This document shows, piece after piece, positions 3,271 to 63,999 of a DNA stretch of 64,000 bases. This DNA comes from Macrostomum lignano. Its lineage: Eukaryota. Every line of letters begins with the position of its first letter. The stretch's first letter is position 1. Position numbers and translations under genes: made by a program. The notes below the pieces were generated by a model. It made no database searches. It worked only from the letters and a program-made list of their open reading frames with translations, and had not been told where the DNA came from. The stretch spans positions 868,001 to 932,000 of the forward strand of contig NIVC01000067.1 in assembly GCA_002269645.1 (NCBI GenBank). The letters are read 5' to 3'.

Positions 3271-4127
3271 CTGAGCTCAGAGATTATTAAACCGTCTCAG
3301 ATATAAAAGAGGCAAATTCTGTTCTGAGCAATTTAAAGTTACAAAATTTACTTGATATTTTCGTAGACTGCCTTAAAAATTTCTCTGCAGGGGACCAAGT
3401 GCAGCCGCAACCCTGCTCAGCTTAACTCGCTCACTGGGGCTGCACTAACCATTGCCATCTCTGCTTAACTTTCTGCGCCAGAAGTAATTTGGCTTGTCCA
3501 AAAAATCAATTAAAAATTTCGCTCGAATCAGAATGAAATTTGCTTGGTTGCAAACCTATAAGGCCTAAACATGTTAGCCTATACATGTCGGCCTATACAT
3601 GTACTCCTGATGTTTTTCAAGTTTGTGTAGGGTCCATCTAAGAGTCCTTGGTGTCAATCCAATACGCTATTGATGTATGGATGACATGGATCAGGCACGC
3701 CGATCAGAGGGTCCCATACTTATCCAGTAAATTTTGTTAATGCATCTTACCGCCTTTTAGTTTTAGCTGCTGCATCGTTACTGTTCACTGTTGATGCCTC
3801 CTTGTAGCTCATGATAGCAGATAATTCATTAATGATAATAATCAGAAAGCCAAGCTCCTGCTCGCATAAAATGCACCAAGGAACTTTACTTCACTTAAGT
3901 GTCAAAATATAGATTAAAGTCAGCTTGAATAGTTGCCATGGGCTCCTATTTGCCCTTCCCACTCCCTTCCCCAGAGGAGATCCTCCAACAACTGCTCCTA
4001 GCTACCGGCTGCGGGATTAAGGAAGTTCATCATCATCCTTTTGATGCTTGCTCCTATATGGACTATTTACTGTCATGCTATTGTTGCGGCTGTCAGGCCA
4101 TTTTTTGTGCAACGCGTGGAACAGCAG

Positions 4128-4338
4128 CGATTTTATAGGGTTGCTTGAGGGCGATTCTATAGGGTTGATTGAGGGCGATTCTATAGTGTTGGATTGAGGG
4201 CGATTCTATAGGGTTGGATTGAGGGCGATTCTATAGGGTTGCTTGAGGGCGATTCTATAGGGTTGATTGAGGGCGATTCTATAGGGTTGGATTGAGGGCG
4301 ATTCTATAGGGTGGATTGAGGGCGATTCTATAGGGTGG
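4128..4338. repeat. 24/25-bp minisatellite (GATTGAGGGCGATTCTATAGGGTT)n
   Basis: About 8 tandem copies. Confidence 0.9.
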
Positions 4339-4923
4339 AATTTAGACAATTTAGACAATTTTAGTATGTTCAAAAATATTTTATTACTTTTTTAACTTAG
4401 GGTTGGTGCAGTTGCTCTTTCTGGTGTAGTTGCGGTTTACTAACGAGGAGATGCGATCAAAAGTAGCAACAATATACTTTCTGGACAGACCTCGTAGGTA
4501 AATTTATTTGGCTTATGCTTTTAAATTATAATATAACATTAGTTAAATGATCTGCATTATATAAAGGTTTAAAAGTTGCGTAACTAAAGCTGAAGACTCG
4601 TATTGTTTAAGTCTTTAGAAATCAACAGTAACTGAAAGTACTCCAGCACTAAAAGAAAGTATTGAAGGCCTATTTTAAAAAATTGCCAAAATGTAACACT
4701 TGATGCGAGCTTTACCAAAAGTACATCCAATTAAGTAATCTATCATTCAAGTTGAATTCTAAGCTTTTCTTCTAAGCTTCGACAATTTCATATCAGTTTG
4801 AGTTCGAATCGGCCTTCAAAACATTTATGAGATTCCCCTAGAGCAGTTATGATCAGTCTGTTTAGTAAATTAGTTAAATAATGCTTGCGATTTAAAAAAA
4901 GTTCATCGCGTCCTTCATTTCCA

Positions 4924-5814
4924 TCAGCTGTCTGCGGCCGGCACAATTCGAACTCGCTGCGACACGCCGAACCGCGTGTGAAATGTGCCGGCCGTCACGA
5001 AGGCGACCTTGCTGCTGCCCTCCGGGTGCCGGAAGCCGAGGTTTCGCTGGAACACCTGGCGCAGATTCGGGATCACGATTGGCAGCAGGTAGCGATTGTC
5101 CTTGGTGTACAGGCGCACCTTGATGCGGCCGGATAGGTAGGTGACGGCCGTGAACCGGGCCTTGAACTCGTCCTCCTCAATCACCACCTCCGCTTCCACC
5201 CGGGAGGGCCGGCCGTCCCGGCTGCCGGGCACCCGGATCTCCGTGTTGATGGCCCACGTCACCTCGGACTCCACCGACTTCTCCGACTCCTTCTCCAAGC
5301 TGAACTCGGCGCTGAAGCCTGCGTTGAGTTCCAGGATGTCCTGCGGCAGCGCGAGCTTCAGGCCGAACTCCTGGTTGAGCACCAGGCCGCGGGTGATGCG
5401 GTAGCAGCAGCTCGAGCGGGTGGTCCTGCTGGTGTTGATGTGGTTGACGATCTCGTGCGGGCACTCGTTGGTGTACACCGTGCGGAATGCACAGCAGCTG
5501 CTGGTGCTGGGCCTCAGCGCCCGGCCCTGAGCCACCACCGTGACGGCCTCGGAGGCAAGCAGCTTGTCATCGTCGCCCTCGCCGTCGCCGCCAGCGCGGT
5601 TGGCCGCCTCAGGCTCGTAGTTGGGCACGGCGGTGACCACCTGCAGCTCGCGGGTGTCGATCTCTCGGCGCAGTTCGCCCCAGGGCAGCCGGCAGCCGAG
5701 CGACTTCTCCAAGTCCTTGCGTTCGTTCCTGTCGTAGATGGCTTCGGCAAACCTGTCAACGATGTCGTCAAGGTTGACGATCTGCTCCTTGAGTGCCGCC
5801 GGCTCGTCCGCCAT
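4924..5814 (-). CDS. Aerolysin-like / ETX-MTX2 family beta-pore-forming protein (LIN-24-like), 296 aa, coding region intronless
   Basis: Clean GC-rich ORF from MADEPAALK. It has FRTVYTN, a Ser/Thr-rich TSRTTRSSC strand, an amphipathic hairpin (ITRGLVLNQEFGLKL..LNAGFSAEFSL), then EVTWAINTEIRVP and AEVVIEEDEFKARF, the motif order of metazoan ETX/MTX2 proteins. Recognised by eye, no HMM run. A splice acceptor ends at 5840. Confidence 0.8.
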   Translation of the reverse strand: MADEPAALKEQIVNLDDIVDRFAEAIYDRNERKDLEKSLGCRLPWGELRREIDTRELQVVTAVPNYEPEAANRAGGDGEGDDDKLLASEAVTVVAQGRALRPSTSSCCAFRTVYTNECPHEIVNHINTSRTTRSSCCYRITRGLVLNQEFGLKLALPQDILELNAGFSAEFSLEKESEKSVESEVTWAINTEIRVPGSRDGRPSRVEAEVVIEEDEFKARFTAVTYLSGRIKVRLYTKDNRYLLPIVIPNLRQVFQRNLGFRHPEGSSKVAFVTAGTFHTRFGVSQRVRIVPAADS

Positions 5815-7079
5815 GACCGCCCGAGTTCCAGCCGTGTTGCTGGGGTGGAGGCAACGGGAAAGAAGAATGAAATTAGGGGATCGGAGATCCACCCTGCCAG
5901 TCTGTATTTAATGCCGAACCGATCGATCGGACTCCTGCCCTCCCAGCCCCAGCAGGCATTTCATAGGGAAGCCCAGAATGACTCTTGTTTTCCTCTCTCT
6001 CATTTCCTTGCCGCCCCAAGGCTTGGCAACAACCGGGGGCGCATTTTTTCGGAGAAGCCTCTCCAGTCTGCTGCTCACCTTCAGATTAATAATCCCGCCT
6101 TCACCCTGAGCAGTCAATCTGATTTTTTCGATCGGCCACGAGATAGAGAGAGAGAGAGAGAGAGAGCGATAAGCATGCAGTGTGTAGGAGAATTCCCCAA
6201 TACAAGCTGCGAGCCTGACTGAGCTATATTTGCCGCACAATAATGCACCGTGTGGAACTCTGTGTGGAAGAGCTGACTGTATTAACAATTCGAAGCAGTT
6301 CTGTTCAATATACGAAGCAAAAGAATCCCAATAATTTGAATATACGTAATATTTACCAACTTTGCAAACAAAATGCACAGAGCCTAAGGATTCTGTCAAA
6401 TATAAAATAATAACAAAATTAATAATTATTCAAATCACCAAAATATGAAAGTTACCTTTTGATATTTACCTAAAAGTCACTGGATGGCAGACCTGCAGAG
6501 GATAGTATAAGTTGGCAACAGAAAGATTCGCGGAAGAGAATAAAAACTTGTGCAGTTTGATTCCAGACTGGTCAGGCCAATCTAAACGCGAAAACTATGC
6601 AGATGAAAGCGATAAAACAAAGTCTTTGTTAAGTGTTTCTGGTTTAGTATCTGCTGGCAAACTGCAAATAAATGAGTAAATCTGCTTCTGCAGATTAAAG
6701 ACAATCTATTAAAAAAGCTGCTTTTTCAACGTGTTGTCTTTCTTCTACGTGTATAGTTTCCTAGAAATGATGCGATGCTGTCCGAAAAAAATGTTAGGGC
6801 AAACTACTTGTAGTAGCTAGTGCGAACATATTTGCAAGCGAGTTTATGTAGCGGTTTCAATGCGCACTTATATCTTTCAAGTTATGACTCCTTTGACAAC
6901 CGCTGATAATAATAAAATAATAGTAACATTAATAATATTAATGATAATAGTCACAATATTACCAATCGCTCGCAGGAAGGCCGTAGGCACCCTGGAGCAA
7001 CGATTTCTTTGGCGACATCATTCTACAACCAGCGCTGACGGCAAATCTGCCAATCCTGAGCACATACAAGCACGCCAAA

Positions 7080-7654
7080 ATCATGAGTGTGAATCATGAG
7101 TGTGAATCATGAGTGTGCATCATGAGTGTTAATCATGAGTGTGAATCATGAGTGTGAATCATGAGTGTGAATCATGAGTTTGAATCATGAATGTGCATAA
7201 TAAGTGTGAATCATGAGTGTGAATCATGAGTTTGAATCATGAATGTGCATAATAAGTGTGAATCATGAGTGTGAATCATGAGTGTGAATCATGAGTGTGA
7301 ATCATGAGTGTGAATAATGAGTGTGAATCATGAGTGTGAATCATGAGTGTGAATCATGAGTGTGAATCATGAGTGTGAATCATGAGTGTGAATCATGAAT
7401 GTGAATCATGAGTGTGAATCATGAGTGTGAATTATGAATGTGAATCATGAGTGTGAATCATGAGTGTGAATCATGAGTGTAAATAATGAATGAGAATCAT
7501 GAGTGTGAAACATGAATGTGAATCATGAGTGTGAATCATGAGTGTGAATCATGAGTGTGAATCATGAGTGTGAATCATGAGTGTGAATCATGAGTGTGAA
7601 TCATGAATGTGAATCATGAGTGTGAATCATGAGTGTGAATCATGAGTGTGAATC
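7080..7654. repeat. 13-bp minisatellite (TCATGAGTGTGAA)n
   Basis: About 44 tandem copies. Confidence 0.95.
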
Positions 7655-8039
7655 ACGCTCACCGATGAGGCATAACTTTGCCTTTGACAAGCGCAAAGTC
7701 ACCAGCGAAATCTTGATTTTGATTTTGGTAAAAGTCGAATTAGTATAAATTACAAGTCTATTTTCTTCAAACTCCATACTAAGCTACTAAAAGTAGCTAG
7801 ATCTGATCTCAATAGCACTGGGCGAGTCTGACTCAAAATCCGGCTTACAGGCAGATGTCAGCATTGGAGCAGCTCCATCCTGTCACGGACTAAAGATAGA
7901 GGAGATGTTCAATTCCAATAGCCGAGAGGTGCGAACTCTGAGACGTATGGAGAGAGAGAAAGTCTGTGCAAATACTGAGGAAGAGAGGTAGACACTGAGA
8001 AAGTTTGGAGAGGCAAGGGGTTGATTCTGAGATGACTTG

Positions 8040-8965
8040 GAGAATATGAGATATAGACACTCAGATTGCTAGGATAATGAGAGGTAGACATTGAAACAAC
8101 TGTGGAGTGAGAGGTAGACAATGAGACGGCTGGGAGATTGAAAGGTAGACACTGAGATTGCTACGAGATTGAGAGGTAGACACTGAGATTGCTAGGAGAT
8201 TGAGAGGTCGACACTGAGATTGCTAGGAGATTGAGAGGTAGACACTGAGATTGCTAGGAGATTGAGAGGTCGACACTGAGATTGCTAGGAGATTGAGAGG
8301 TAGACACTGAGATTGCTAGGAGATTGAGAGGTCGACACTGAGATTGCTAGGAGATTGAGAGGTCGACACTGAGATTGCTAGGAGAATGAGAGGTAGACAG
8401 TGAGATGCCTGGGAGAATGAGAGGTAAACATTGAGATTGCTAGGAGAATGAGAGGTAGACAGTGAGATTGGTAGGAGAATGAGAGGTAGACACTGAGATG
8501 CCTGGGAGAGAGAGGTAGACACTGAGATTGCTACGAGATTGAGAGGTAGACACTGAGATTGCTAGGAGATTGAGAGGTAGACACTGAGATTGCTAGGAGA
8601 TTGAGAGGTCGACACTGAGATTGCTAGGAGAATGAGAGGTAGACACTGAGATTGCTAGGAGAATGAGAGGTAAACACTGAGATTGGTAGGAGAATGAGAG
8701 GTAGACACTGAGATGCCTGGGAGAGAGAGGTAGACACTGAGATTGCTAGGAGAATGAGAGGTAAACACTGAGATTGCTAGGAGAATGAGAGGTAAACACT
8801 GAGATTGGTAGGAGAATGAGAGGTAGACATTGAGATTGCTAGGAGAATGAGAGGTAGACAGTGAGATTGCTAGGAGAATGAGAGGCAAACACTGAGATTG
8901 CTAGGAGAATGAGAGGTAGACACTGAGATTGCTAGGAGAATGAGAGGTAGACAGTGAGATTGCCA
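8040..8965. repeat. 31-bp minisatellite (GAGAGGTAGACACTGAGATTGCTAGGAGATT)n
   Basis: About 28 tandem copies, degenerate at the left end. Confidence 0.95.
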
Positions 8966-9617: not shown

Positions 9618-10034
9618 ATGACGTCAGCCGTTGGCGGTACTGGACTGTTCAAAGCGCCGTACCGTCTGTCCAGACGGCAGCCGCAGCTGCCTCTGGTCAG
9701 CTCCGGGGAACCTGCAGCCAAGTGGAAGGCCGCAGCTGCCGCCGCTGCCGCCGCCGCCGCCTCGGCAGCAGGAACAACCGACTCTGATTCCAACGCCGAC
9801 AACAAGGAGCCGCTGACATCCGAGGATTGTTCAACAAAGTCTTCTTCGACTTGCTCAGATGCGCTGCCAAATTCGACTGAGGCGACTACAGCGAGTAGAA
9901 AAAAGTCGGTCAACTTCCGGTTGTCGCCGGCTGAAGAAGCGGCTGACAGGGAGGCACAGCTGCTGGCCTCGCTGGGCATCGAGTTCCGGCCTGGGCGAGT
10001 CCGGCCGAATCCCCATGGCAACCGGATGCGATAA
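9618..10034 (+). CDS. Orphan 138-aa low-complexity protein or terminal exon (poly-Ala, KKSVNF motif)
   Basis: GC-rich island preceded by a pyrimidine tract with AG at 9601 and another AG at 9617 directly before the ATG. No family recognised. Confidence 0.45.
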   Translation: MTSAVGGTGLFKAPYRLSRRQPQLPLVSSGEPAAKWKAAAAAAAAAAASAAGTTDSDSNADNKEPLTSEDCSTKSSSTCSDALPNSTEATTASRKKSVNFRLSPAEEAADREAQLLASLGIEFRPGRVRPNPHGNRMR

Positions 10035-10488: not shown

Positions 10489-10921
<433 letters not shown>

Positions 10922-11615: not shown

Positions 11616-12605
11616 ATGCACTCTGCCAGTCTGCCCGACTACGTCAATGCCGAGGCCATGCAGATGCAGCAGCACCTCCAGAAGCCCGCAGGTTCATCGA
11701 CCACCGTGTCCATCTCCACTGGCAGCAGCGAGACTGACGGGGAGTCTGGCTGCTGCTGTCTCTGCTGCTGCTGCTGCTTTTGCTGCCGCGGGACCGGACG
11801 GAGCGAACTGGACGAGCGGGCGGGCCGGTTCGCCAGCGCCCTGCTGCTCCTGGCAGCGCTGCTGCTGTCGGTGGATGCGGCCAGGCTGGCACTTTTCGGC
11901 TGGCACTCGGACGGCGCTTTCCTTCGCTTCAACTTCGCCGGCTCCGGCCCCGGCGTCGACTGGCCCCGCTGCGGCGGCGGCAGCGCCGGCACTCTGACGC
12001 CGCTGCTGGACAGGTCGGCGCGAGAGGCGCCAAGCTGGCTGTCCGAGGCGCGCCAGACTCTGGACAATAGTCTGCTGCTGGCCGGCCAGGCTGTCGAAGT
12101 CGGGCTCCGCCTGCCGCGGCCAAGGCAACCGCCGAAGCCGCTGGTCCTGGCATTGAACCACGCGGGCATCGCCGCGAGCGTGTGCCTGCTGGCGGCGGCC
12201 GTCCTGCCGGCCTGCCTTCGGCCACGGCGGCCCGCCCGCTGCTCGCTGGCAGCGGGAATCGTCCTGGCAGCCTCAGCCGTCGGCCTGTCGCTGCTGGCCA
12301 CGTCGGCGTGTCTGGTGAAGCTCTATTTCTTCACCCTGTGCGAGGTCGGCAGCTCGCAGGCCGAGCCGCCCCGCTACGACAGCCTCGTGCCGCCCTGCCC
12401 GCTGCTGCGCAAGGCGTTCTTCTGCGCCGAGTGCTTCAGCCTGCTGGTGCTGATCGCCTCCGCCTGCATGGCCGCCTGCCTGCTGGCCTTCCTGTCCAGG
12501 GCCGCCTGCGGCTGCGACAACCGGCGGCCAAGCCTGCGGCAGCTGCCCCGGCGTCGGCGGAATCGCAACGACGAGGGCGACGTTGGCGTGGGATTCAACG
12601 TCTGA
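11616..12605 (+). CDS. Intronless four-TM membrane protein (claudin/PMP22-like topology), 329 aa, with N-terminal Cys cluster
   Basis: Four hydrophobic segments with a large loop after TM1; CCCLCCCCCFCC before TM1; basic C-terminal tail. Acceptor CAG ends at 11603, 12 nt before the ATG. Family not determined. Confidence 0.75.
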   Translation: MHSASLPDYVNAEAMQMQQHLQKPAGSSTTVSISTGSSETDGESGCCCLCCCCCFCCRGTGRSELDERAGRFASALLLLAALLLSVDAARLALFGWHSDGAFLRFNFAGSGPGVDWPRCGGGSAGTLTPLLDRSAREAPSWLSEARQTLDNSLLLAGQAVEVGLRLPRPRQPPKPLVLALNHAGIAASVCLLAAAVLPACLRPRRPARCSLAAGIVLAASAVGLSLLATSACLVKLYFFTLCEVGSSQAEPPRYDSLVPPCPLLRKAFFCAECFSLLVLIASACMAACLLAFLSRAACGCDNRRPSLRQLPRRRRNRNDEGDVGVGFNV

Positions 12606-12654: not shown

Positions 12655-13086
12655 TGGATTGCTAGACTATGATAGGGATTGCTAGTCTATATGATATGGA
12701 TTGCTAATCTATATGATAGGGATTGCTAATCTATATGATAGGGATTGCTAATCTATATGATAGGGATTGCTAATCTATATGATAGGGATTGCTAATCTAT
12801 ATGATAGGGATTGCTAATCTATATGATAGGGATTGCTAGTCTATATGATAGGGATTGCTAGTCTATATGATAGGGATTGCTAATCTATATGATAGGGATT
12901 GCTAATCTATATGATAGGGATTGCTAGTCTATATGATAGGGATTGCTAATCTATATGATATGGATTACTAATCTATATGATATGGATTGCTAATCTATAT
13001 GATAGGGATTGCTAATATATATGATATGGATTACTAATCTATATGATATGGATTGCTAATCTATATAATGTGGATTACTAATCTAT
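12655..13086. repeat. 22-bp minisatellite (GGGATTGCTAATCTATATGATA)n
   Basis: About 19 tandem copies immediately after the stop codon of the 4-TM gene. Confidence 0.95.
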
Positions 13087-13458
13087 TGCAAATTAAATTC
13101 AAAATAGTACAGGATTTCAGTCTCTAACCAAAAATAAGTACATAATGAAAATTTATACTTCAACAGTCCTCTGAGCAGACTGAGAATTCACCAACGCACA
13201 GGCGCCAGTTAAACAAACCCGTTTAGCTCATAATGGTTTCAAATTGCATTCATTGCAGCAAAGCCTTCCCACAAGAACTGCACTGTATGTACCGCAACTG
13301 CTTGCCGATGCATGATTGCTTCTCAGATACTGAAACCTCATCAACTGACGGTCATAATGCTTTTCTGTCCGTGTTTGTCCACTTGCGATAAAGCGCTGTG
13401 CATTGCCTTTCTCTTTTTTGAGATATAAATTGGGTTCTATTTCCAGCAACTGGGACTA

Positions 13459-14212
<754 letters not shown>

Positions 14213-14505: not shown

Positions 14506-15002
14506 TGAAAAAGACAGGAAGCGTTTCCCTGCTGGAGAATAGCAAACTCATCTAGCGGTACAACCAAACCACTTGCCAAATGCACTTTTCCTGGAGCTCA
14601 GGCTTCACGCGGCGACTTCCTAATTTTCATTCTTTTGCGTTGCGTGCCCTGCGAGCCAACCTAGCATATTTTTCGGCAGCCAATAAATCAATCCGGCCGC
14701 TGGAGCTGTTCCTGCCTGCTTGCGGCTGAAACTCTCTCTGCCTTCAACAAGGCGGCCGCTTCCTCTCTGCAGCCGCCTCTGCTGCTGCTGCTGCTGCTCC
14801 CCTTAATTGGCCAAGATAAATATCAGCGGCATTGATTGAGGAAAAGAGCGATGCAGCGATCTGGGAAGACTTTGTGTTGACATTGGGGATGCTGGGAGAG
14901 TGCGGCCGTCATTGTGCGTGAGTACTGCGAGTTGGGAGCTTGCGGAGTGCACTGCTGATCATGGTTTGATCTGGGGTTCTCTGAGGCCTCTGTAGGAGAG
15001 AG

Positions 15003-15364
<362 letters not shown>

Positions 15365-32577: not shown

Positions 32578-34551
32578 CTATGCCTTCTCAGACCCGTCCG
32601 ACTGGCGCTGCGACAGCACCGCACCAAGCCCAATTCGAGAGCTGGCATCCGTGTCAAGAATAAACTCACCAGCGTTTGGCGAGAAGTCTGGAAAAGCCAT
32701 AACGCTTGGCGAACACAGAGCCGCTTTCAGACTGTTGAACGACTGCTCTTGGGCTGGGCCCCATTTGAACTCGGCATCGTTCGCTACAAGTCTGTAGAGC
32801 GGAGCGGCAATCTCGGAAAAATTTGGAATGAAAGCTTTGTAGTAAACGCACAGTCCGAGAAACGATTGGACTTTGGCCACACTGCAAGGCCTGGGCCAGT
32901 CCTGGATTTCGGCACACTTTTCTGGGTTCGTTGCTATTCCATCCTTGGAGATCACGTGACCTAAGAAGCTAATCTTTTCGGCCAGAAAGACAAATTTTGC
33001 TGGCTTCAGCTTAATGTTAGCACTTCTGAGACATTGGAACACATGCTCAAGGCGCTCGAAGTGCTGCTGCACAGTCGTGGAGAAGACAACTATGTCGTCG
33101 AAGTAGACGAGGCATTCCTTCCAGTTGACTTCTGACAGTGCCATGGACATGAGTCTCGTAAAGGTTGACGGGGCGTTTTTGAGCCCGAAACTCATGCACT
33201 TCCACGCAAACTGTCCCCGATTCGGCACCACGAAAGCGGTCTTTAACTGGTCTTTCGACTCCAGTGGGCACTGATGGTACCCGGATGCCAGGTCCATCGT
33301 GGAAAAGATGCAGTTTCCCCGAGCGCATCAAGAGTCTCATCCATCCTGGGCGGAGGCAGAGGATCAGGCACGGTCACGCTGTTCAGACGCCTGTAATCCA
33401 GACACATTCTGAGACTGCCATCCGACTTTCTAACCGGAACCACTGGGCTCGACCAGGGTGACTGACAGGGATAGATGCGGCCTTCAGCCAGCAGTTGATC
33501 AACCTGTTTATCAACCTCACTTCTCCAGTGCGGCGGGATTCTGCGCAAGGGTTCAGTCACGGGCTTTGCGCTACCCGTGTCGATTTCGTGCGCCATCAGA
33601 TTCGTGAGCCCGAGTTCAGAGCTGTCTTTGGCAAAGACGTCACGATTTTTGGCAACCAGGGAAACAAACTCTCTTGCCTCTGCGTCTGATAGGCCGCAGG
33701 CACCCCACTCTTTGACTTCGCTGAGGGGACTCCACAGCTCTCCTTCTGACTGGACGGCATTCAGCTGCAGCTCCGCTGGCTGCTGCGCAGAGACCGGCGA
33801 AAACCAGCCAACTCGAGTGCCCCGCCTTATCGACAAACTGCACTCCGACGTGTTCAGAATCCTGACAGACAACTGACCCTCTTGATCAGGCAACTGCACC
33901 GATCTGGCCAGCAAATGATCACCTGCTGCCCGACGCTCGGACTCCACCATTCCAGGAAACTGAAATCCCCTCACCCCGCGTCTCTGAAGGCGGACTGGGA
34001 CCAGCTTCTCCTCACCGACATCCATCCGGACAGCCTGGCGCAGCACGATGCGGCACACAAGGGGTCTGTCAGCACAAAAACGGAAAGGAAAGACACACGA
34101 TTCTGTCTGCAGGCAGTGTCTAGCGAAATCAATTATCATGCAATGTCTAATGAAAATAATCGGTTCCTAAAATGCATGGCTGTGAAATTTCATCGACAAC
34201 TAAGAATTCGTGCTCAAATTTTGTCTCACCAATCGAAAAATTCGGATTAATTCGGCCTAAAATTTGAATTGGCTCACCACTCGCTGTGTAAATTGAAAAA
34301 TCAGTACTACAATTCTGAATTTTGTTCTTAATTTTGGCGGATTCTAAGAAACGACTACTAAGTAATGACACTGTGGACCCGCTGTCCAGCAAACAAGCAA
34401 CCAAGGGCCCATATTCAAACTTTGCGTCAATATAACCCAGTCCAGTTCCACCAAGCACACTCTGGATCTGGGTTGTGGGCCCTGGCGCTTCTTCAATCAC
34501 TGCAGACGGGGCCCGGGACGCTGGCCTGGCCGGCCCCCCATCCCGTTTCCC
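32578..34551 (-). pseudogene. pol: Gypsy pol (protease LLDSGS, RT YFDD, RNase H DTDAS) with two frameshifts, truncated
   Basis: Segments 34147-34620, 33243-34139 and 32578-33297 join through frameshifts near 34150 and 33310. The frame ends at DGSEKA*. Confidence 0.93.
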
Positions 34552-57220: not shown

Positions 57221-57699
57221 TGAGCAGGCCCCAGAGAGACGGGAAGAGAGATGGAGAGTAAAAATGAAGCGAGAAGCATTGCAAATGTTAAAAGCAGAGC
57301 AAAGAACACAGTGGAAAGAGTTGCGGCCTCTCTCTTTAATTGAACTGGGAGTGGACACTCAACAGGGAAACAGGCCTCAGCCAAAGGGTGCAGCAAAGGA
57401 GGCGCAAACTGACTGAACTGCGCACCCGCCCTTAAGAATAGGAGACAGAGTTGCATAATTCATCAGCGTATTCTGGACTGGATCGGATTTTCAATTTTTC
57501 GCATTCAATTCGGCAAGCGGTTTCAATCTCCGGGGAATCGAGGAATCCCAGGTACTTTCAGGAAGCTCTGACTTTCCTTAATAACAGGATGCTAACTTTA
57601 ATTAAAACAAAATATTGAAGACCTTGAAAACTAGAATAAAGCAACTCAGATCCAATTACATTTCCAGTCTCACTACCTATATATCTAGTCTCCCTGCCC

Positions 57700-58135
57700 T
57701 CCGATCTCCGATCTAGTCTCACTGACTCGGATCTAGTCTCACTGATCTCTGATCTATTATCGCTAATCTCTGATCTAGTATCGCTAATCTCTGATCTAGT
57801 ATCGCTAAACTCTGATCTAGTCTCACTGATCTCTGATCTAGTGTCACTAGTCTCTGATCTAATCTCACTGATCTCTGATCTAGTATCGCTAATCTCTGAT
57901 CTAGTATCGCTAATCTTTGATTTAGTATCGCTAATCTCTGATCTAGTATCGCTAATCTCTGATCTAGTATTGCTAATCTCTGATCTAGTATCGCTAATCT
58001 CTGATTTAGTATTGCTAATCTCTGATCTAGTATCGCTAATCTCTGATTTAGTATCGCTAATCTCTGATCTAGTATCGCTAATCTCTGATCTAGTCTCACT
58101 GATCTCTGATCTAGTCGCACTAATATTTGATATAC
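57700..58135. repeat. 21-bp minisatellite (TCTGATCTAGTATCGCTAATC)n at the start of NRG intron 1
   Basis: About 20 copies. Confidence 0.93.
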
Positions 58136-58183
58136 GAGCTAGTCCCACTAGTCTAGTCTCACTACCAATAGATTTAGTCTCAC

Positions 58184-58367
58184 CAGTAATATAATCCACC
58201 TCGACCGCAATGAGGTACCGAGCTCGAACCCCGGGACTGGCGGTCGTAGCCAAAGCAGATCTCGAAGTTTCACCCTGCGACTCTTGAGCCGCGACGCTGA
58301 AGCCGGCAAGTAATAGTGTTACCATGGCAACGAGCGCCGACAGGCGGTGTTTGGTAATTCGCCGCAT
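58184..58367 (-). CDS. NRG: Probable first NRG coding exon with signal peptide (MRRITKHRLSALVAMVTLLLAGFSVAAQ...VEVDYIT)
   Basis: Classical n/h/c signal peptide; G|GTGAGA donor, phase 1, compatible with the Ig exon acceptor at 52100. Confidence 0.65.
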
Positions 58368-62700: not shown

Positions 62701-63999
62701 TCACCTCCGGGACCGTGTCTCTTCCCGCGTTGTACCGCAGGTTTTGCGGTGTCTCGCTAGGTTTGATTTCGATATTTCTCGAGCACAGTTCGCGCATTTT
62801 ACGCGGTTTCCTCCCACTTCTCTCTCTCCTCCGCAGACCTTTACGTGGTTTAACCACGTTGCCTCTTGCCTGAACTGCTTCTCGCATTTTTCGCACTTGA
62901 ACGTTACTGGTTCTTCTATCTTGCGGTGCATCCTCTTTTGGTGAATGGTCAGGCCTGCTTTGCTTTTGCACTCCTTTCCGCAGTCTGCGTATTCACATAT
63001 GAATGTTCTTGTTTTCTCCTGTTTCTGTTTGTCGTTCCTTTCGATGTTCCTTGCTTCTGCCTTCTTTCCTTGTTGTTGTTCCCATCTCTTGAGGTGGCTT
63101 ATGCGTTCTTGAACAATTTTTCGCCATTTCTGGCGGTCGGTTGCTAGTCTCTCTGTCCTTTCGGGCTCGATCCCTGCTTGGCGTAGTAGTCGCTTCCAAT
63201 ATTCAATGGTGTTACCTTTTCTCGTACGTGTTTTCTTAATCTTTTCCAGACCTTTGTACCATCCGAGAACCATCTTTTTCGTTAGGCGGTTCGCCTCCAT
63301 GCGAAGCACATGTCCGATGCGGATCAGGTGGCTCTTCTCAATCTTTGTTTGTATTGTCGTTACTTCTAGTTCATTGCGAATGTCCTGCATATTTATTCCT
63401 TTTGCCTCCATTTCCCTTAGTGGTTCCATTTTCCTGCTGCTCCATATCTGCCGGTAGATCCGGTCCATGAAGCTTTGTAGTTGTTTCGTTTCTGACTTCA
63501 GGAATGGGCGTATGTTCGCGTGGAATAGCAGGATGCTCTCTATACAGGCTTCAACGACCTTCGCTTGCGTGGTCTTTTTCAACCTGCACTTGATGAAACG
63601 TCTACGGATCGTCGACCAGCTTCTCGCCGCTTTTTGCAATCTCTGGCTCGTGTCATATTTCGTGTCCGTCCATGATCCTAGCATTCGTACTTTTCCTCCC
63701 TCTCTGGTTCCGAATATCATTACCTCTTGCTTTTTGTCGTTCGTTTGTTCTTCGAATCCTGCCATTATTTCTTTCGTCGACTCTAGGCCCGCGCTGAGTT
63801 CCTTGCGGTTGCCTAGGATAGTGGTGTCGTCTGCGAATAGAACTGTTCTGATGAGTTCGGTTTTGGTCTCCGAGTTTGGTTGGTTTCTTCGCTGAGGTGG
63901 GAGTGAGCTTCCTGGGAGGTATGTCCATTCGATTCCGCATATTTGCTCTTTCTCCTTCGCTGTTTGTGTTCTTTTCTCCTCGACTTCCCTGATGCATGC
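62701..63999 (-). mobile_element. RTE-clade non-LTR retrotransposon ORF, 3' part (RT FADD, RIGHVLRM, three C-terminal zinc fingers)
   Basis: Stop-free from the window edge: ..TVLFADDTTILG.. to C2H2 CEYADC..HQKRMH and two C2HC fingers. Confidence 0.93.

Follow-up and report, generated by a model that had tools for sequence, protein, structure and literature searches.

A leaderless, intronless gene of the flatworm Macrostomum lignano encodes a diverged member of the animal ETX/MTX2 family with a predicted aerolysin-type fold

We analysed a stretch of 64,000 nucleotides from the genome of the flatworm Macrostomum lignano (hereafter the window; positions 868,001 to 932,000 of contig NIVC01000067.1), in which one open reading frame (ORF) encodes a protein of 296 amino acids. 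The gene belongs to a known animal family, in which it is unusually diverged and has gone unannotated. Our preferred reading, to which we give a probability of about 0.7, is that it is a native, vertically inherited M. lignano gene whose product is a single-lobe, three-domain ETX/MTX2 pore former of the aerolysin superfamily, in the metazoan family to which the glabralysins of the snail Biomphalaria glabrata belong. An earlier interpretation made by a model from the letters alone (the sequence-only reading) had proposed a leaderless metazoan ETX/MTX2-type protein of the glabralysin kind; this is borne out by transitive matches to the Pfam family PF03318, profile matches to proteins of the PDB, structural comparison with Foldseek and direct homology to the glabralysin Gla2Aa1. 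The proposals made below for pore formation, subcellular location and biological role draw on analogy with the glabralysins, LIN-24 and Dln1 / beta-gamma-CAT.

The ORF list and its translation place the start codon at 5812-5814 and the TGA stop codon at 4924-4926, with an uninterrupted frame between them. This agrees with the 296-residue frame without a coding intron that the sequence-only reading described, which left the strand unstated; it is the minus strand. The window protein is identical at 295 of 296 positions to the NCBI entry 'hypothetical protein BOX15_Mlig016627g1' of M. lignano. Its exact sequence is encoded on NIVC01000067.1 (1.13 Mb; assembly GCA_002269645.1), and near-identical copies lie on two further sister contigs, giving three genomic copies. 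These copies differ at 3-4 of the 891 positions of the coding sequence (CDS), and the five variable sites comprise four synonymous changes and one D215N substitution, while the flanks within the same BLAST blocks differ at 44 of 2368 and 58 of 2386 positions (about 1.9-2.4%). The CDS is thus 4-7 times better conserved than its flanks and its changes are mostly silent, which is modest evidence for constraint. In a tblastn search the rest of the window showed no further copy and no paralogue. Upstream, a polypyrimidine-CAG motif with a strong likeness to a 3' splice acceptor ends 25 nt before the ATG, and from this motif the transcript may be cis- or trans-spliced in its 5' untranslated region (UTR). 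Opposite the GC-rich CDS runs an antisense ORF of 260 amino acids (window 5440-6222, plus strand), which is most likely a by-product of the high GC content at third codon positions (GC3) of the other strand and no gene. The CDS also contains, within its 3' end, an inverted repeat of 27 nt (window 4935-4994; imperfect, 78% complementary, 6-nt spacer), which may be due to chance.

When the window protein was compared exhaustively with 1.84 billion cluster representatives by phmmer, the search returned 188 relatives at E ≤ 1e-3 and 68 at E ≤ 1e-10, with E-values down to 1e-34. These relatives are typically 250-270 amino acids long, and the matched span of the query is residues ~100-291. The comparison with the Pfam model ETX_MTX2 suggested by the sequence-only reading succeeded for the relatives and failed for the protein itself: PF03318 is matched by 45 of the 68 relatives in our alignment (A1), with a best E-value of 1.6e-13, and the window protein gives no match at E ≤ 10 and so does not reach the gathering threshold of 22 bits. 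A profile built from A1 matched PDB sequences of Cry51Aa (7.4e-10), Cry23Aa (1.6e-9), the zebrafish natterin-like protein Dln1 (4.7e-9), the Laetiporus lectin LSL (1.6e-4), epsilon toxin (8e-4), a lamprey natterin-like protein and two Bacillus thuringiensis (Bt) crystal proteins, 2d42 and 2ztb (parasporin-2). Matches to Bt Mpp proteins ranged from 7e-10 to 5.5e-4, and the profile alignments span the hairpin and the W..VP motif described below. In a word-indexed homologue search, the window protein as query retrieved only itself and one paralogue, and the 68-sequence profile retrieved at least three proteins. Membership in ETX/MTX2, as judged from sequence and from the predicted structure, comes through transitive homology and fold and not through the curated Pfam model, which probably misses the protein because four conserved residues have been lost and an insert has been gained.

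The connection to a named glabralysin is made through a Biomphalaria relative (P0117) that begins with MFLDTRFKS and ends with VKVTQAPL, the termini encoded by the PCR primers for Gla2Aa1 (Table S1, PMC7016736). By this primer match P0117 is Gla2Aa1, and the window protein is therefore homologous to a named glabralysin (phmmer 4.3e-7 library-wide; pairwise BLASTP 4e-15; 21% identity over residues 102-293). The Gla1 primers encode the same leaderless start, M-x-(I/V)-DL-V-DL (PMC7016736).

AlphaFold2 with A1 as the multiple sequence alignment produced a model with a mean predicted local distance difference test score (pLDDT) of 84 and a predicted template modelling score (pTM) of 0.76, in which only the two ends of the chain, the acidic insert and the loop of the hairpin have low confidence; a single-sequence run (pLDDT 34) was uninformative. 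The model predicts an elongated, mostly-beta, three-domain fold of the aerolysin type. Foldseek comparison of the model with the PDB gave 34 matches at E ≤ 1e-3, every one an aerolysin-fold protein. The best is 2d42, the 26-kDa crystal protein of Bt (Cry45Aa), with an E-value of 3e-12, a TM-score of 0.60 normalised to the target and a probability of 1.00; it is followed by Cry23Aa (4rhz, 3.8e-12), Cry51Aa (4pkm / 5hd2, ~1e-10), parasporin-2 (2ztb, 3e-8), epsilon toxin (3zjx / 1uyj, ~1e-7), Mpp75 (7ml9, 7.5e-7), Dln1 (4zno, 1e-6) and proaerolysin (3c0m, 4.5e-6). The lamprey protein LIP and LSL are also within the 34, and a Bombina aerolysin-like protein (6lh8) falls just outside at 2e-3. The structure prediction and Foldseek search that the sequence-only reading put forward have thus returned the aerolysin fold, so that the outcome it named as refuting, a lack of any profile or structural match, did not arise. 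On this model, the window protein is structurally closest to the Bt Mpp proteins Cry45/Cry23/Cry51, and its sequence identity to the bacterial structural neighbours is only 11-15%.

All of the sequence features from which the sequence-only reading argued are present and can be placed on the alignment (Table 1). In the Ser/Thr-rich strand (N127-C137), R130 and T132 are conserved in the family. It is followed by an alternating amphipathic hairpin (residues ~143-174), which aligns to the corresponding region of Cry51Aa and Cry23Aa and appears in the model as a low-confidence loop, as expected for a pre-stem loop. The longest strictly alternating run, LELNAGFSAEFSLE, has 14 residues, a length reached in 73 of 2000 shuffled sequences, so that on its own it is only mildly unusual; its weight comes from conservation in the family, where alternation is kept column by column in the 68 relatives. 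From residue 150 to 174 the columns of A1 alternate between nearly always and nearly never hydrophobic, with hydrophobic shares of 100% at position 152, 3% at 153, 100% at 154, 91% at 161, 3% at 162, 99% at 163, 4% at 164, 100% at 167 and 0% at 168, and Pro157 stands at the hairpin turn in 65 of 66 sequences. This alternation is characteristic of the aerolysin-type membrane-insertion hairpin. The W..(T/S)..VP motif takes the form W187-AINTEIR-V195-P196 in the window protein; W187 is invariant in the family, and the motif aligns to 'W..s..v.VPP' of Cry51Aa and Cry23Aa. Beyond it, E214, F221, G229, G276, G283 and Q286 are conserved in the C-terminal strands. The chain ends four residues past the last strand, leaving no C-terminal propeptide like that of aerolysin or epsilon toxin.

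At the other end of the protein, residues 1-65 carry the family motif I-x-(D/N)-L...V..(W/F)A, a long helix (residues 15-39) and short strands. The N-terminus, MADEPAALKEQIVNLDD..., has no hydrophobic core, as the maximum Kyte-Doolittle value in a 9-residue window over the first 40 residues is 0.9, and hydropathy reveals no segment resembling a transmembrane helix anywhere in the protein. The relatives start at the same position, with the motif M-x-x-x-(I/V)-x-DL, and of 128 full-length relatives only 5 are hydrophobic at the N-terminus. The lack of a signal peptide, also claimed in the sequence-only reading, is hence a property of the family and not an artefact of the gene model. One of the five, a 458-residue protein of Seison nebaliae (P0012), has a clear signal peptide and an N-terminal low-complexity extension of ~230 residues.

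These features are consistent with the following mechanism for the window protein. A soluble monomer would bind its target membrane through the variable head (domain I), which here has an extra disordered acidic loop. After binding, the protein would oligomerise, and the amphipathic hairpin (residues ~143-174) would peel off the sheet and join the hairpins of neighbouring subunits in a transmembrane beta-barrel. With neither a signal peptide nor a C-terminal propeptide, like nearly the whole family, the protein is probably synthesised in the cytosol. It would then either target internal membranes or leave the cell, by a non-classical route or when the cell ruptures.

The main rival to this pore-forming interpretation is that the fold has been kept and pore formation lost, leaving a soluble binding, scaffolding or regulatory protein, for instance a negative regulator of a pore-forming paralogue; we consider this non-lytic binder or regulator unlikely. 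Several observations weigh against a pore former and some of them speak for this rival directly. The branch of the window protein is long, and four conserved residues have been replaced (D14N, W54T, T118C and Q122I), of which T118C and Q122I break the family motif N-x-T-x-x-x-Q; a direct scan of the protein against Pfam, NCBIfam and the PDB sequences yields no match even at E ≤ 10; and its head carries the extra acidic disordered loop. The Foldseek TM-scores are moderate (0.45-0.60), and the PDB deposition of the top structural match, 2d42, calls it a 'non-toxic' crystal protein. Proteins with the aerolysin fold are in some cases without demonstrated lytic activity. Among the closest animal systems, the glabralysins are proposed immune effectors for which pore formation is unproven (PMC7016736), and LIN-24 of Caenorhabditis elegans, which is linked to infection, starvation and cell death, is biochemically uncharacterised (PMC12945463). 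A precedent for a regulatory role exists in the toad Bombina, where BmALP3 is described as a negative regulator of BmALP1 (PMC7995273). Against the loss of pore formation stand the strict amphipathic alternation and the Pro157 turn retained in the hairpin, and the mostly synonymous differences between copies. In total, 17 of the 21 most conserved positions of the family are kept, including every position conserved at ≥90% (N116, T132, P157, W187, E214, F221, G229, G276 and Q286).

The acidic insert GGDGEGDDD noted in the sequence-only reading is present as residues 75-83 (window 5566-5592) and forms part of a larger insertion of ~30 residues (~66-98). The insertion starts directly after a homologous P-N-Y-E, within one or two residues of the site at which the M. 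lignano paralogue Mlig017252 has an intron. We considered whether the insertion is a missed in-frame intron and rejected this: its GC3 of 0.85, against 0.90 in the rest of the CDS, reflects the same codon bias, all 13 in-frame GT..AG candidates lack both a splice consensus and a polypyrimidine tract, and the closest paralogue (P0002, 59% identical) keeps a coding insert that is similarly long, though divergent. The same loop is expanded in a few other relatives (P0031, P0035 and P0078), and the position is a permissive site in the head domain.

The intron of Mlig017252 is a single canonical phase-0 intron of 509 nt (GTAAGT...CCAG, 45% GC) that lies directly after ...AEYS (residue 61). Relatives carry one to three introns: Schistosoma spindale has one of ~26 kb near residue 207, for which a spliced transcript contig exists, Saccoglossus has a small one after residue 3 and Adineta has two or three. 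That the paralogue and these relatives have introns and the window CDS is uninterrupted would fit a retrocopy of an intron-containing parent such as Mlig017252, functional or decaying, as the sequence-only reading suggested. We regard this as quite unlikely, since the hallmarks of retroposition were looked for and not found, with no poly(A) remnant after the stop codon and no flanking target-site duplication; moreover, all three copies keep an intact ORF, at a 4:1 ratio of synonymous to non-synonymous changes, and the acceptor-like site upstream suggests normal processing of a host transcript. At only ~31-35% identity to Mlig017252 any retroposition must be ancient, and it would predate the duplication that gave rise to P0002, which shares the insert region. 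Intron positions are not shared between any of the lineages examined, which makes simple intron loss an equally good explanation. In the preferred, native-gene reading, the Mlig016627 lineage (the window gene and its 59% paralogue) is a fast-evolving offshoot that has drifted below Pfam detection, lacks the Mlig017252 intron and has gained ~30 residues at that site.

All 13 named relative clusters are from animals (Metazoa). They include M. lignano Mlig017252 (three copies), the bdelloid rotifers Adineta ricciae and A. vaga, Seison nebaliae, the acanthocephalan Neoechinorhynchus agilis, Saccoglossus kowalevskii, Octopus bimaculoides, Lineus longissimus, Schistosoma spindale and Biomphalaria glabrata, and the nematode members of the family come from Ditylenchus dipsaci and Trichinella spp. 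In a neighbour-joining tree (251 columns, 200 bootstraps), the window protein groups with its 59% paralogue (100%), and these two group with Mlig017252 and two unnamed environmental sequences (70%); the Syndermata (99%) and the nematodes (100%) are also recovered, and deeper nodes are weak. The schistosome lineage falls in a different clade together with Saccoglossus (92%), which suggests at least two old paralogous lineages. In part, the tree follows animal phylogeny. Two database entries call for comment. P0002 (343 amino acids), which UniProt lists as 'Rad60-SLD domain-containing', starts without a methionine; the initial ~73 residues resemble a translated 5' UTR, so that both name and N-terminus are probably artefacts. 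In Trichinella, gene models fuse an ETX/MTX2-like module to an ERCC-6/RAD54-like protein (P0065, 1159 amino acids), which is probably a merged annotation.

These relationships bear on lateral acquisition, which the sequence-only reading had raised. Animals have repeatedly acquired aerolysin-type genes of bacteria (Moran et al., as cited in PMC7016736), the window gene has no coding intron, and its GC content of 65% (GC3 0.89) exceeds the 39-43% of its immediate flanks. A recent transfer from bacteria, or bacterial contamination of the assembly, is nonetheless very unlikely and the least probable explanation that we weighed. The gene lies inside a 1.13-Mb flatworm contig between host minisatellites and occurs in three allelic or homeologous copies, its codon composition is host-like (GC3 of other host ORFs nearby is similarly high, 0.72-0.87), and a canonical spliceosomal intron interrupts its paralogue. 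Every named relative is an animal, the tree follows animal phylogeny in part, and the bacterial structural neighbours are distant in sequence. When 185,579 bacterial and archaeal genomes were scanned for exact peptide patterns, which is a weak test, no close relative was found. The metazoan family as a whole may still go back to an ancient bacterial source.

Of the characterised systems, the glabralysins provide the closest comparison. Five are described from B. glabrata (Gla1Aa1, Gla1Aa2, Gla1Ba1, Gla1Ca1 and Gla2Aa1; Lassalle et al. 2020, PMC7016736); they have three domains, of which the head is the most variable, their best templates are 2D42, 4RHZ and Cry51, and their genes contain 3-4 introns (PMC7016736). 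Their phylogeny largely follows species relationships, in a sample of groups without flatworms (PMC7016736). Like the window protein they are leaderless single-lobe ETX/MTX2 proteins of ~250-300 amino acids with a most variable domain I and the same structural templates, but the window gene has neither their introns nor their match to Pfam ETX_MTX2, and its product has the acidic insert of ~30 residues in the head. The Bt Mpp proteins (Cry45Aa, 2D42; Cry23Aa, 4RHZ; Cry51Aa, 4PKM/5HD2; parasporin-2, 2ZTB) share the order of head, hairpin and W..VP motif and give the best structural (Foldseek 3e-12 to 3e-8) and PDB profile matches; unlike the window protein, they are bacterial, secreted or crystal-forming, often activated by proteases and without an acidic loop, in addition to the low identity given above. 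Clostridium perfringens epsilon toxin and Aeromonas aerolysin agree with it in fold class (Foldseek 1e-7 and 4.5e-6) and in presumed mechanism, from a prepore to a beta-barrel formed by the amphipathic hairpin, but these toxins carry signal peptides for secretion and become active when terminal propeptides are removed, whereas the flatworm protein has no leader; aerolysin also has an extra lobe. LIN-24, Dln1 (4ZNO), lamprey LIP (5ZU4) and Bombina BmALP1 (6LH8) are, like the window protein, endogenous leaderless animal proteins with an aerolysin-type pore module. Dln1, LIP and BmALP1 differ in having added lectin or beta-gamma-crystallin domains, and only their pore module matches (about 200 aligned columns). 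Proposed roles of animal aerolysin-like proteins lie in immunity, stress or the endolysosome (PMC12945463, PMC6370762).

The family extends well beyond Macrostomum among the flatworms. With the Schistosoma protein as query, we retrieved orthologues from eight further Schistosoma species, Heterobilharzia, Trichobilharzia, Dicrocoelium, Fasciola hepatica, Paragonimus, Calicophoron and Echinostoma, from the cestodes Schistocephalus and Spirometra and from the monogenean Cichlidogyrus. These fluke, tapeworm and monogenean proteins (P0014, P0185-P0206 and P0030) are all named 'uncharacterized', and all but one are without a precomputed Pfam domain. In direct scans, nine of these proteins have ETX_MTX2 as their best Pfam family, at 15-20.9 bits for eight of them and 22.7 bits for that of Dicrocoelium, against a cut-off of 22; Mlig017252 scores 22.0 bits, exactly at the cut-off. 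A wider reading of these data, which we hold to be improbable on the whole, is that flatworms, including all major parasitic lineages (schistosomes, liver and lung flukes, tapeworms and monogeneans), retain a leaderless ETX/MTX2 pore-former family for endogenous use, which has escaped annotation because it lies just under the Pfam threshold, with the acidic loop of Macrostomum as a built-in regulator. Such proteins may act on the animal's own membranes or through non-classical secretion and not as classical secreted toxins, and in the target-binding head of the Macrostomum protein the site of the lost intron could have become a loop, disordered and acidic, with the function of an autoinhibitor or switch of membrane binding.

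In the literature searched we found no description of a flatworm ETX/MTX2 or aerolysin-like protein, Macrostomum included, or of the Mlig016627 locus. Endogenous pore formers of the aerolysin/ETX-MTX2 type are an emerging class in animals, and their roles are poorly understood. For toads, the proposed role lies in the endolysosome. Other roles given for such proteins are in snail immunity (PMC7016736) and in starvation, infection and cell death in C. elegans (PMC12945463). While the present gene points to no new mechanism, it gives the family a footing in a flatworm with transgenesis, RNA interference and regeneration assays, and the conserved unnamed genes of medically and agriculturally important parasitic flatworms stand to gain a corrected annotation and possibly an entry to function.

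Table 1. Features of the gene and its surroundings (positions in the 64,000-nucleotide window; aa, amino acids of the window protein).
Feature	Position	Strand	Basis or remark
Complete single-exon CDS, 296 aa plus TGA	4924..5814	-	ORF list, translation, 295/296 match to NCBI protein
aa 1-65, leaderless N-terminus and head (domain I) elements	5620..5814	-	alignment, model, hydropathy
aa 66-98, lineage-specific acidic insert, predicted disordered	5521..5619	-	gap in most relatives, pLDDT 45-60
aa 127-137, Ser/Thr-rich strand NTSRTTRSSCC before the insertion hairpin	5404..5436	-	sequence, conservation table
aa 143-174, amphipathic pre-stem (membrane-insertion) beta-hairpin GLVLNQEFGLKLAL-PQD-ILELNAGFSAEFSLE, Pro157 turn	5293..5388	-	column-wise alternation, model
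aa 187-196, W-x-(V/I)-(D/N)-(S/T)-x-I-x-V-P	5227..5256	-	alignment
aa 197-296, long C-terminal strands (domains II/III)	4927..5226	-	alignment, model
Polypyrimidine tract and CAG (TTTCATTCTTCTTTCCCGTTGCCTCCACCCCAG), candidate 3' splice or trans-splice acceptor	5840..5872	-	identical in three copies
First AATAAA past the stop (416 nt), candidate polyadenylation signal	4503..4508	-	inferred from sequence
Satellite arrays, part 1	203-569, 1183-1662, 4127-4336, 7079-7655, 7983-8963
Satellite arrays, part 2	10581-10919, 12668-13086, 13458-14122, 14999-15364

The flanks of the gene are dominated by minisatellites. The first 16 kb of the window are dense in micro- and minisatellite arrays with periods of 4, 8, 13, 18, 22, 23, 24 and 31 nt; the arrays produce numerous long but spurious ORFs on either strand, and array copy number varies among the three sister contigs. 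The sequence-only reading had set the gene among intron-rich neighbours, which is not borne out: the nearest NCBI-annotated gene (annotated on a sister contig; window ~9618-10034, plus strand, 138 amino acids) is a single exon. None of the other flanking ORFs has a Pfam match. An ORF of 329 amino acids (window 11616-12605, plus strand), likewise without a Pfam match, has a GC3 of 0.87 and several hydrophobic segments resembling those of a membrane protein; its region is ~97% conserved on the sister contigs, where no gene is called. Farther into the window, an ORF at 32578-33297 (minus strand) with RVT_1 (8.9e-25) and RT_RNaseH_2 (3e-11) domains is a retroelement fragment. Of two minus-strand ORFs at 62701-63765 and 57558-58367, one contains C2H2 zinc fingers and the other is rich in coiled coils, with many weak matches to coiled-coil families.

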